From sequence record NC_010821.1: a stretch of 64,000 nucleotides of DNA; one strand, 5' to 3'. Both the position numbers and the translations under genes were made by a program. The notes below the pieces were generated by a model. The model saw only the letters and a list, made by a program, of their open reading frames with translations. It ran no database searches and had not been told where the DNA came from. Of this stretch, positions 10,257 through 15,279 are shown piece after piece. Each line of letters begins with the position of its first letter. The first letter of the stretch is position 1.

Positions 10257-10457
10257 TCAGTTGTAAGCTTTGAATTTAAGAATGCGACCAATCACACTGG
10301 CCTTGATATCGTTAGCTGTGATGTACTCGCCTTCGATGGTATTAGCTGCGGAGTCAGAACCCATGGTACGAGCGATTGCCTCGTATGCCAATTCAGCTGC
10401 GGCGGTCAGAACAGCTAAGTTCTGACCATGTACTACGTTGTTACTTTGCTTTTGCAT
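10257..10457 (-). CDS. small hypothetical protein
   Basis: 66 aa, overlaps the end of the beta gene. Confidence 0.55.
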   Translation of the reverse strand: MQKQSNNVVHGQNLAVLTAAAELAYEAIARTMGSDSAANTIEGEYITANDIKASVIGRILKFKAYN

Positions 10458-11580
10458 TTACAGTTCCTCGATAAACACCAGCTACCCGTTTAGAGAGAGC
10501 TTTCAAAAGAATGCTGGTCGTTGCGATTAGTTTAGGAGACATTACCATCCGTTCTTCCACAGAGGTGTTGCCGAAGATGATGTCAATTGGAGTGCCGTCT
10601 TCCAGAGTGTTAGTGCCAGTCATCACACGAGAGATAACAGTCTTCATCTGGTTACACAGTACAGCTTTGTCACCTGTACCGAATGGGATATCATGGTCGA
10701 TGTAAATACGAATAACCATGCTATCTGGTTCCAAGATCTGACCTTTAATACGGAAGGAGGAATCAACCTCACCCGAATAAGCATTACGTCCAGTTTGCTG
10801 AGCAATCTCTGCACGTGCTTTGTCTGAGGCTTCTGCGAGTTCACGCAGGTTATCAGACATGTCTTCGATGTCACCATGATAGAAACATTCGATCTTAGAA
10901 ACCGTACCTACGACCTTAGCAGTAGGGGTAGAAGACGACAGTCGTTTGAGCGTCTCAATAGAGGCATCATCAAACAGCGAGCCTGCGGCCGTTTCGGGGT
11001 CTTCAATAATACACAATATTGAACTGAGATCCAGATGGTCACCCGGCTGAACCAATTCAGATACGTGCTGATCAAACCGAACGATAACGTTCTTCACGTC
11101 AGTGGTCTGTGTATTAAGCTTCTTAGCAATAGACTCAGAAACTACCGATCCGTCTTCCAGAGTGTCCAAGTTGTCATCAAACGCAACTACACCGATTACC
11201 CCAGGCATCAGAGAAACCTGATCTGGATTGTAACGGTCTTCTTTGAAATATTTCCGGTTGTATGTAATTGTGTCACCACGTTTAAATTTGTCACCTTTCT
11301 TAAACTTGGTAACCAATTCGTGTGGATACACAACACCCGCAGCTGAACCGTGAATCGTGCCAAGGGGCATTGATTCAACTTCACCATCGGCGTACTGTAC
11401 AGTAATACCGTGTTTGTCCAACGCAACTACTTGACCATCTTGCTCTGCTGCTGTAGCAAAGATACTCGATGTACGTTGACCTACGACCTGTTCGTAACCT
11501 GTACGTACAGGCGAAAGATCGTAACCGTCAGCATACAGACCTTGTTGTTGCTGAATCGAAGCAAAGCCGATCCGCTTCAT
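10441..11580 (-). CDS. virion RNA polymerase beta subunit, exon 2
   Basis: MKRIGFASIQQQQ continues RpoB HDD.NR...Q; VRTGYE, GDKFKRGD and LEDGSVVSES RpoB-like motifs; no SD before 11580. Confidence 0.85.
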   Translation of the reverse strand: MKRIGFASIQQQQGLYADGYDLSPVRTGYEQVVGQRTSSIFATAAEQDGQVVALDKHGITVQYADGEVESMPLGTIHGSAAGVVYPHELVTKFKKGDKFKRGDTITYNRKYFKEDRYNPDQVSLMPGVIGVVAFDDNLDTLEDGSVVSESIAKKLNTQTTDVKNVIVRFDQHVSELVQPGDHLDLSSILCIIEDPETAAGSLFDDASIETLKRLSSSTPTAKVVGTVSKIECFYHGDIEDMSDNLRELAEASDKARAEIAQQTGRNAYSGEVDSSFRIKGQILEPDSMVIRIYIDHDIPFGTGDKAVLCNQMKTVISRVMTGTNTLEDGTPIDIIFGNTSVEERMVMSPKLIATTSILLKALSKRVAGVYRGTVNAKAK

Positions 11581-11916
11581 CGTGATATTCAGTATGAGTC
11601 GTTAATTCATACCCGCGCCATTACGCGCAGCTGCATGTCGCCATGCAGACTAGACTATATCTTCATCTCAGTGAGATGCTCCCCATTTCCACCCACTTGG
11701 GTGTACACCGTGATAAGCGGTTAGTCGTTGAACGTTCCTTACATTTCTGTAAGGCTTCGCTGCTGATTGTCTCAGAGAGATATCCCAGCAATTAAAGGAG
11801 ATTCCATCTAGGTATCGCTACCTAGTGGGACTGTATCTATTAAATCTTTGTATTGGATAAACCAAGTTGTCGACCACACTCAATGTAGCGTAGACTTTAC
11901 AAACATTCAATACACA
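11581..11916 (-). mobile_element. group I self-splicing intron (336 nt, no endonuclease ORF)
   Basis: Minus strand: P AAUUGCUGGG (11793-11784), Q AAUCAGCAG (11768-11760), R UCAACGACUA (11731-11722), S AAGAUAUAGUCU (11663-11652); exon ends in U, intron ends in G; splicing restores HDD|MKR in frame. Confidence 0.9.
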
Positions 11917-14900
11917 ATCATCGTGGGCAATACCAACACCCAGCAATGCAGAAGTCGAAAGCAGTTTAGACTTACCATCTTTAGATGGGTCATACAAACG
12001 GGTCAAACCACGCATCGATGTGAAGTTAGCATCTGGCGTCATGTAAGCAATAATACCTACGTCACCAGAGTCAACAGTCGACTCAGATACAACACCCAAA
12101 TCAGACTCACCATAAATACGAGTACGAGCAACCATCGATACCGCTGCACGCCCACCATCACCACGATAGGTCATGGCTTCTTGTTCACGCAGGTTAGCGA
12201 TTGGGTTGGAGTCTTCAATCGTCGCTACAGTCGGGTCGTTGAGTTTAGTCCATACTTCATGACGATCCAGAATCACCTTGACATCAGTGGAACCTTCACG
12301 TGCATTGTAACGCTTGATGGCCTTAGACAACGAACTGAAGATCTGACCTGCAATACGTTCGTAACCACGATAGCGCATGTACTGACCATCTACTTCACCC
12401 GGAGACCAATCTTCCATCAACAGTTCAACCGATCTGAACAGCAGACCTTGGAAGTCTGTCGGTTCACCCATCTCTATCAGCATACCTTCAGTGATCGGAT
12501 CAACGAATGCCTCAAACAGGAAATCGATTTCACGAATGAAACGGTTACCCATGTCTTGTTCGATCAGCACACGGTGATACACATCCTTCTTATCGAAGTC
12601 ATAACGAGAGTAATTACGCAGCACTTTGTGATAACGACGCAGACCACCTAAGACCAACATCGAACGATAATCATCGCGTGGGAACACAAGGATCTCATCG
12701 TTGAATGCCAATGTGTAATCGTCGCCAGTCACCACGATACTCTTACCACGTGAATGCGCTTGGTAGCTAACGCCCAACAGATCCAGCAAGTTAGTCAACC
12801 CGAGTTGATAGCCCAATACAAAACCAATTGGGATGTCCTTACCCGAGATCTTAACGTCAACAGCTTCCAGTGGAGCTTTAGCAGCGTTGATACCAGTCAT
12901 GTCCAACAGCGTACCCATTGGTTCCAACTCGTTACCTTCTTTAAGATAGAAGATACCAGCTTTATCCAACAGAATAGCATGTCCTTCACGAACACCTACC
13001 ATTACGTATCCATCACGTTCATTGAACTCTGGATCGATGTTGAACTTTTCCTTAAAGTACTTAGCTCGATTAGGGTAGTTGAAGTAAAGGTGATTGGCAC
13101 CGTTGTCAATACTAGCGAACTTACCGGCCATGGCCGAGTAAACACGTGGTAGGTGATATTCAGACAGATCCAACTCAATGTATTTCTGGTTGGTCACAAT
13201 CGGGTTAGTAGCATCCCGAGCTTTCGTATCGATCTGACGAGTTAACCAAACATCAAAAGCATGCTCTGCACGAGGTGAACGCATAACGAATGTTTTATTG
13301 GTATAGCTAGTCAGCGCAACCCGAGTAGGAGATACTTTACGGATTGGAATATCTGCCCGCTGAACGCGTTGACGATACGTTACGCCGTTACTGAGGAAAC
13401 GACCATCTTTATCGATAACAGGAATTGTAAAGTTAAGTTGTGAAGCCATACCACGAACCGGCTTAACTGTAACCGTGAAGGTTTGAGTGTGGTTCATAGC
13501 GTCTTCGTTTTCTTGAATCTTGATATCTGTTACAGCCACGCCTTGACGTTGAATCGCCATGATCGATTGCAAGATATCTTTTGGTAACAGAGTCTTGATG
13601 TACTTACGCATCATCGACTTGTGTACCGAACGCAACATGGATTTATCCATGATGGTTGTTTTATCAGGGAACTCGTGAGCAGGTACCTCGAAGTCTTCCT
13701 TGGCGTATTGCATGGCTTCTTTAACAGTCAGACCACTACCAAATGGATCAGGCATTTCTTCATAACGCTGGGCGTCATCAATAGCCATCTCGAATGTACG
13801 TTCAGAGATCATACCCACTTTAGCCAGACGGAATGCACGCTTTGCTACACCATCCAACATCTTATCGCCAGTAGTGAACTCTTGGTCAATAATCGTAGCT
13901 GGACGAGCCTGTTCCACCTTGAGGGTCTTAGCTGCGACCCCACTGAGTTCATCGTTTTCGATGTTAAGCGTAGTACGTTCAAGATCCAGCTCTGGTGGTG
14001 GCTCAAAAGTAACCTGCAAAATATCCAGATCGAACGACCGGTATACTTTACTGAGAGGTGGCGTTACCACCTCAGGTTCTTCGATATCGAGGTCAACACT
14101 GACTTGCTTAGCTTTGATCTCTACCGGTTCTTCCTCTTCAGAGAACTCTTCTTCGTCTTCATTAACGACGATTACTGGCTCATCAGATTCTTCAGCTTCG
14201 GCTTCGATCATGGCATTGGCTTGAACGTTAGCATCGTTCTCGATCAGTTGATCGTTACCAGCAGCATACTCAACCAGAGTAGTCATCAAACTAACAAAGC
14301 GGCGCTGAATCAACTCAGGTTTGAAGTAAGCTTCCATGCCGAATTCATCGACATAGGTTTCAAAGCCGTATGTCAATCGTTCGCTAATACCCATATCAGA
14401 GAGGTTACGTTTCTCTTCATAGGTCTCATAGTTACCGTCGGCATCTTGATAAGTCTCAAAAGTAACTGCATCTTCCAGTAGCTTGAGTTTATCCGCTTCT
14501 TTCTCTTCTTCGGTCTGTTCACGCCATTCGTCCAGCTTACCCAAGTTGATAACAAAGAAGCTACCTTGAACTCGGATAAAGAAGTTGATCTGCGGGAAGT
14601 ATTTCTTATCGACTTTAGAGACAAACGAAGTCTTACGATCTGGACCCAAGAATCGATACAGATCAAACAGATCCATCAATTCACCTGTACGGAAAGTCTC
14701 CAACAGGTTTTGAGTTTGAGACGTTTCGAACATCTTGAACTGAGCCATAGTCGGCATCGATTCAGGAACATGCAGCTCGATGAAATGGTTCCACGTTGGG
14801 AACCGAGTGCAGGCATCTTGTACCCCATCCCAGAAAGTAGCCGTGTCGTTCACCCAACGATAGTAGTTAGCTTTATAGCTAGCGATGTATCGATACAGTG

Positions 14901-15279
14901 GATTCAGCAGGTTGTAGTTAAACAACGCTACGTTCTGTTGGTTCAGTTTAACCGATTCATCACGACGCAGTGGTTTGAAGAAACGATTCTGTCTACGGAA
15001 GTCATTAATCAAAGTAGGTGGTAACACCGAAGTACGCTTTGGGTTACCTACTTCAGACTTAAGTTCGGTGATCTGTTCAAGGAACACCTTACCTTTAAGT
15101 TTGGCAATGATTGGATCTACTTGCGATGGACCTAAGACGGCTTGGTTATCCGCATGAAAGTGATACACTGTTTCCATAGGGAAATCGAATTTACCAATCG
15201 CGTGCAGACGCGGAGACTGAAGCTCCGCTGCCTGACGTAGACCAAAGCTTCTTAAAAACTGGTCAATTTTTAAACGCAT
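11917..15279 (-). CDS. virion RNA polymerase beta subunit, exon 1 (phiKZ gp178 / SPN3US gp241-like); spliced product 1500 aa
   Basis: 1121 codons ending ...GVGIAHDD; RpoB-like GVTYRQRVQRAD, YRGDGGR and ESTVDSGDVG. Confidence 0.88.

Follow-up and report, generated by a model that had tools for sequence, protein, structure and literature searches.

The intron that separates gp211 and gp209 of phage PhiPA3 carries the gene for the HNH homing nickase gp210 (Birkholz et al., 2024, PMC11620839), an enzyme that nicks the intron-less gp178 gene of phiKZ and also the intron-less junction of PhiPA3 itself (PMC11620839). A related intron lies between gp71 and gp73 of phiKZ and encloses the HNH gene gp72; it interrupts a different gene, encoding the β subunit of the non-virion RNA polymerase (RNAP), at another site. 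For Pseudomonas phage 201phi2-1, the GenBank record presents gp273/274, the gene for the β subunit of the virion RNAP (vRNAP), as one joined CDS ("RNA polymerase beta subunit") with the notes 'identified using mass spectrometry' and 'interrupted by a mobile...'. A diagram of the genes for the vRNAP subunits of SPN3US, phiKZ, and 201phi2-1 has introns marked in it (PMC5105663, 2016, Fig. 7), and ONT-cappable-seq of 201phi2-1 provided two reads from which exactly the annotated intron is spliced out and no further introns in this phage, the authors wishing for more coverage (PMC11512511, 2024); as cited in the latter work, earlier proteomics had pointed to an intron in gp273/274. Because it was annotated when the genome was deposited and has been published since, the 201phi2-1 intron itself is already known. 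To our knowledge, and within the literature searched, what is new is its resolved P1 helix, a family of introns at the same site that includes those of phages EL and HPP-Temi, and a possible sibling armed with an endonuclease. Taken together, the data presented here make it very likely that the 336-nt insert is a functional, ORF-less and, by its architecture, IA2-like group I intron of gp273/274, which is spliced via P1 to give a β subunit of 1500 amino acids, and that it is one member of a same-site family whose distribution follows the pattern of a homing cycle.

The DNA analysed here (the window, a stretch of 64,000 nucleotides) is 100% identical to 201phi2-1 (NC_010821/EU197055) in the region of this gene, window base 10441 corresponding to record base 196441. 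Features are collected in Table 1. Alignment with the uninterrupted gene of Viktualia, the closest sequenced relative (83% nucleotide identity), leaves a clean 336-nt gap at GAT|ATG and fixes the junction to the base, so that the coordinates given in the preliminary description are exact. HDD-MKRIGF is likewise read without interruption in two relatives from IMG/VR (L005 and L006). Removal of the insert joins 1121 and 379 codons in frame at HDD|MKR, which adds up to the 1500 residues proposed before. When both exons were queried separately, exon 1 matched PHROG 3148 ('RNA polymerase beta subunit') at profile positions 2-1051 of 1424 and exon 2 at positions 1051-1423, which makes exon 2 the direct continuation of exon 1, with exons that abut exactly. 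The insertion point is situated directly after the second Asp of HDD, in a very conserved segment of RpoB. Exon 2 also matches Thermus RpoB weakly (residues 579-656 and 821-884); Pfam searches gave no match for either exon, and a PDB sequence search with the final 350 residues of exon 1 gave none. If not spliced, the frame of exon 1 runs for 32 codons into the intron (CVLNVCKV...) before it meets a stop, and no Shine-Dalgarno-like sequence was found upstream of the ATG with which exon 2 begins, both as described earlier. The small ORF gp272 (66 aa, window 10257-10457, minus strand) overlaps exon 2 by 17 nt at the 3' end of the exon, and its position is kept in Viktualia, HPP-Temi, PA1C, and phiKZ (PHIKZ177.1).

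Table 1. Features of the interrupted vRNAP β gene of 201phi2-1 (window coordinates) and of the newly recognised introns at the same site.
Feature	Position	Strand	Description
Exon 1, vRNAP β gene gp273/274	11917..15279	-	1121 codons; 3' end ...AHDD, GCC CAC GAT GAT
ORF-less group I intron	11581..11916	-	336 nt; first base U, last base G
P1, 5' strand	11912..11919	-	exon GAU (-3..-1) + intron nt 1-5 UGUGU; RNAfold, pair check
Extended P1 arm (P1a, P1b, two small hairpins)	11839..11911	-	intron nt 6-78; HNH gene in this loop in PhiPA3
P1, 3' strand/internal guide sequence	11829..11836	-	intron nt 81-88, AUACA GUC
P2 hairpin	11808..11825	-	7 bp, GCGA tetraloop
Catalytic core: P3, P4, short P5, P6 (GAAA loop), P7, P7.1, P7.2, P8, J8/7	11653..11800	-	Rfam alignment, pair check, covariation
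P9.0 (2 bp), P9 (GCGA loop), P9.1, P9.2, 3' tail	11582..11650	-	pair check, covariation
Terminal G (omega G), 3' splice site	11581..11581	-	sequence, pair check
Exon 2, vRNAP β	10441..11580	-	379 codons; begins ATG AAG CGG (MKRIGF)
HPP-Temi intron	L036:2308-2655 (PP968062)		348 nt, ORF-less; RF00028 70.5 bits
EL intron	L035:2086-2500 (AJ697969 199959-200373)		415 nt, ORF-less; RF00028 40.5 bits, E 1e-8

The insert folds as an intact group I ribozyme. A covariance-model search, a check that had been recommended with the original assignment, finds the group I intron family RF00028 at window positions 11851 to 11631 (minus strand) with 87.4 bits and an E value of 6.2e-21 over the full model (1-253), the gathering score of this family being 50 bits; this is the sole Rfam match in the 64-kb window and the sole RF00028 match in the 316,674-bp genome of 201phi2-1. 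P4 (UGCUG(G)/(U)CAGCA), P7 (GACUA/UAGUC), the P8 hairpin, and the P9-type hairpins named in the preliminary description are all recovered in the Rfam alignment and the pair check, as are the U that ends exon 1 and the G that ends the intron in the sequence. P7, the guanosine-binding helix, is formed by G191-A195 with U260-C264 and P3 by C117-U122 with G233-G238, the two together constituting the pseudoknot. All pairs are canonical in 18 of 18 helices according to a scripted pair check, and GNRA loops close P2, P6, and P9. For the cores of four introns, those of 201phi2-1, PhiPA3, phiKZ gp71/gp73, and one from phage PA_ZH1, RNAalifold predicts 74 pairs, half of which (37/74) show compensatory changes on both sides. 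Between 201phi2-1 and PhiPA3, a G-C pair of P2 is replaced by A-U, and the P9.0 pair U268-A334 of 201phi2-1 is A-U in PhiPA3, as judged by eye. P7.1/P7.2, situated between P7 and P3', and P9.1/P9.2, which follow P9, are present, and all four covary when the related introns are compared. From this architecture alone, we infer an IA2-like intron. For P10, the 201phi2-1 intron has a weak helix or none.

P1 is contained in the minimum-free-energy structure that RNAfold calculates for the exon tail plus intron nt 1-113. The 5' splice site lies just after the U at 11917, and on the exon side this U(-1) forms a wobble pair with G86 at the splice site, followed by A(-2)-U87 and G(-3)-C88; with these, the exon side has only 3 bp, whereas the intron side has 5 bp. 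In five introns (201phi2-1, PhiPA3, HPP-Temi, EL, and phiKZ gp71/73) the guide is found 3 nt ahead of P2. In EL, HPP-Temi, and phiKZ gp71/73, P1 covaries on its intron side (U3-A to A3-U, U5-A to G5-C) and, between the two insertion sites, also on its exon side, where GAU/GUC compares with GGU/GCC. Other guides were considered and discarded. A naive guide scan proposed G43 (GUGUG GUCG), which would pair mostly by wobbles and lies in the variable loop; this guide was rejected because its segment is not conserved among the related introns, EL and HPP-Temi lacking it and both PhiPA3 and the wastewater contig described below having other sequence in its place. A guide near nt 40-46, chosen by eye (GUUAU at nt 42 in PhiPA3), was dropped on the same grounds.

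The preliminary description had suggested comparing the insertion site with that of the PhiPA3 intron. Gene and site are identical, the PhiPA3 intron (L002:4089-5440, 1352 nt) being placed after the second Asp of (H/N)DD, between AAC GAT GAT and ATG AAA CGC, and the two introns are homologous and closer to each other than had been assumed, with about 70% identity over 320 aligned nt and 84.6% over the core aligned by BLAST. Their 5' and 3' ends and their P1 guide regions are homologous (intron nt 66-92 are identical), and both possess P7.1/P7.2 and P9.1/P9.2. In contrast, of the two only the PhiPA3 intron has P5 extended by about 70 nt and an HNH ORF of 330 aa within the extended P1 loop. The product of this ORF, gp210, is an I-HmuI-type protein (HNH_3/NUMOD). 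It is encoded by PhiPA3 intron nt 67-1059, between the strands of P1b, and the end of its reading frame, approximately 15 codons, extends over P1b, P1a, the guide, and P2. At the position of this ORF, 201phi2-1 has 16 nt (nt 49-64). Its intron lacks any endonuclease ORF, the longest frame in all frames measuring 65 codons between stops, and Pfam has no match for the two longest ones. A search for gp210 homologues, which recovered gp210 and one paralogue from PhiPA3 as a positive control, found none in the genome of 201phi2-1 or in that of Viktualia.

The introns of HPP-Temi and EL share the insertion point of the 201phi2-1 intron, lack ORFs, and have the same P1 design, GAU|UG.. with ..GUC at 3 nt before P2. 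They are 63% (HPP-Temi) and 45% (EL) identical to the 201phi2-1 intron, and both have a P5 extension. The score of the EL intron does not reach the gathering threshold of Rfam, but all core motifs and P1 (GAU|UGAG with CUCA GUC) are present; no mention of it was found in the literature searched. Whereas the 201phi2-1 record joins the two exons in one CDS, the records of HPP-Temi and EL list them as separate genes and mis-annotate one spliced gene as two. In HPP-Temi, these are two CDS for 'RNA polymerase beta subunit', with a hypothetical ORF of 39 aa within the intron, and in EL the intron lies between ORF186 and ORF187, annotated as two hypothetical proteins. Since exon 2 begins with a Pro codon in HPP-Temi and with a Val codon in EL, its independent translation cannot start at the junction. 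The site is not occupied in phiKZ/PA7, Phabio, PA1C, Viktualia, L005, and L006. A scan of IMG/VR with a 20-nt motif returned PhiPA3 only, and the 14 loci detected in metagenomes with a conserved 19-nt motif from the 5' part of the intron were dismissed as chance matches in which the exon context is missing.

Outside this site, the phiKZ gp71/gp73 intron has a core that is about 80% identical to that of 201phi2-1 over intron nt 114-290, and it uses exon GGU with guide GCC for P1. phiKZ gp72 and PhiPA3 gp210 have in common that the endonuclease is encoded in the P1 loop; in the phiKZ intron (L033:519-1772), gp72 is contained in a long extended P1 stem, in which AUAUCCAUCCAUC is paired with GGAUGGAUGGAUAU, and PHIKZ072.1 is an annotated ORF inside the ribozyme core. 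The phiKZ-like phage PA_ZH1 possesses two full-length RF00028 matches within about 850 nt (L034:1449-1698 with 88.9 bits and L034:1964-2284 with 75.6 bits), and a 37-aa fragment of an 'HNH homing endonuclease' (L034:1888-2001) overlaps the start of the second one. The P5 extension of this second intron closely resembles that of HPP-Temi, a likeness that hints at exchange of modules between introns of different genes.

A core of the 201phi2-1 type occurs on a wastewater contig of 1213 nt. It aligns without gaps to window positions 11708-11852, with 6 differences in 145 nt, and because the alignment is ungapped, the contig has the short P5 and does not derive from PhiPA3. In place of window positions 11853-11889 (intron nt 28-64, in the P1 loop) it contains 980 other nucleotides, after which it matches positions 11890-11974, that is intron nt 1-27 and 58 nt of exon 1, with 11 differences in 85 nt. 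Such an arrangement would be expected of a sibling that has an endonuclease gene in a 201-type intron, and judging from this single contig, one may exist in a phage that has not been sequenced.

The distribution of these elements fits a single family of introns at one site in nucleus-forming phages of Pseudomonas, in which a homing cycle operates and endonuclease-free copies persist. The preliminary description considered that the 201phi2-1 intron had lost its weapon; this putative loss would fit the standard homing cycle. It is quite possible, if not the outcome we would expect, that the ORF-less form is ancestral instead and that the P1 loop was entered by a free HNH gene in the lineage of PhiPA3 and in the wastewater variant alone. 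ORF-less introns make up three of the four at this site, the HNH gene occupies a terminal loop, where a secondary invasion would be expected to place it, and nt 49-64 of 201phi2-1 are devoid of any recognisable remnant of an ORF. Also, phiKZ has related HNH genes that are free-standing or intron-borne, and the PhiPA3 record labels gp210 as similar to phiKZ gp179. However, the 201phi2-1 hairpin of nt 22-48 is the counterpart of the PhiPA3 hairpin that encloses the ribosome-binding site of gp210, the patchy distribution, with the intron present in 201phi2-1 and missing in Viktualia, L005, and L006, requires mobility, and a nearly identical core with a 980-nt insert does exist in wastewater. Loss is favoured by the hairpin upstream of the ORF site and by the wastewater contig, and the opposite by the predominance of ORF-less introns. 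Co-conversion of exon flanks with PhiPA3 was not detected, as only 10 of 39 201phi2-1-specific sites within 300 nt of the junction match, which is the chance level, and there is no peak of identity near the junction between the two phages.

The alignment with Viktualia shows that the half-sites are physically separated by 336 nt in 201phi2-1. Protection against a gp210-type enzyme would probably follow passively from this occupancy, a standard consequence in the homing cycle. A more ambitious proposal is that the introns at HDD belong to a single family whose homing cycle is active, that, as suggested by the wastewater contig, a 201-type sibling armed with an endonuclease still circulates, and that the ORF-less copies of 201phi2-1, HPP-Temi, and EL are resistance alleles against gp210-type nickases. 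We put this forward tentatively and regard it as rather unlikely to hold in full; if true, intron occupancy at one codon would help to decide which chimallivirus wins in mixed infections.

More doubtful is the suggestion that the ORF-less intron is kept by selection as a shield, interrupting the target of a gp210-type nickase and protecting 201phi2-1 during co-infection. The 201phi2-1 intron occupies the site of the PhiPA3 intron, whose gp210 is published to nick intron-less sites of phiKZ (gp178) and PhiPA3 only (PMC11620839), intron-less relatives retain a similar target sequence, and both intron-exon junctions of 201phi2-1 resemble those of PhiPA3 itself, which are presumably self-immune. 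Likewise, the wastewater contig, with its short P5, close match, and large insert, may indicate that a sibling of a size suited to encode an endonuclease circulates. In contrast, a homing cycle can be expected to let ORF-less introns persist even where selection is absent, and the intron is missing from Viktualia and the two phages from IMG/VR, which are the closest relatives of 201phi2-1. Moreover, gp210 is of the I-HmuI type, and nickases of this type reportedly cut intron-containing alleles as well (Goodrich-Blair and Shub, 1996). The recorded hosts also differ, being P. chlororaphis for 201phi2-1 and P. aeruginosa for PhiPA3, and in phiKZ the phage nucleus already keeps gp210 out.

Whether or not the intron protects its carrier, the virion polymerase of 201phi2-1 would depend on its removal. 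In the proposed sequence of events, GAU at the end of exon 1 and intron nt 1-5 of the pre-mRNA would pair with nt 81-88 to form P1 with U·G at the splice site, guanosine-initiated transesterification would remove the 336 nt up to the terminal G, a chemistry ascribed to this intron by its family membership, and ligation of HDD to MKR would provide the β subunit of 1500 amino acids. That full-length β requires splicing, as put forward in the preliminary description, is supported by the in-frame joining of the exons. Splicing in vivo rests on the published reads and on the mass-spectrometry note in GenBank; contigs from three public runs with DNA of this stretch cover small shares of it only and do not cover the spliced junction, and no report on self-splicing of this intron in vitro was found in the literature searched. 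It is highly improbable that the ribozyme is dead and that the two ORFs yield separate polypeptides which assemble, for although exon 2 starts with ATG and RNAP subunits of jumbo phages are often split (PMC7598289), the core is intact and shows numerous compensatory changes, the ATG has no ribosome-binding site, Viktualia, L005, and L006 have the same Met within a gene that is not interrupted, and spliced reads have been published (PMC11512511).

The preferred reading, that of a spliced group I intron, describes ordinary and documented phage biology and not a discovery; its value is modest and comparative. At precisely the codon that the PhiPA3 endonuclease targets in phiKZ, four phage genera have homologous introns, three of them endonuclease-free, and this series constitutes natural material on whether occupancy protects against an intron-borne weapon.

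Compared with better known systems, the 201phi2-1 intron has a core similar to that of T4-type IA2 introns (td, nrdB), T-even introns being among its 763 BLAST hits, and, like them, it interrupts an essential gene at a conserved catalytic motif. T4 introns encode their endonuclease in P6a or P9.1. The family to which the PhiPA3 intron belongs differs from them in that the endonuclease is located in the P1 loop and in that the host gene codes for a subunit of a multisubunit RNAP packaged in the virion. In the co-occurrence of ORF-less and ORF-bearing forms at one and the same site, the introns described here correspond to the homing cycle of Goddard and Burt.
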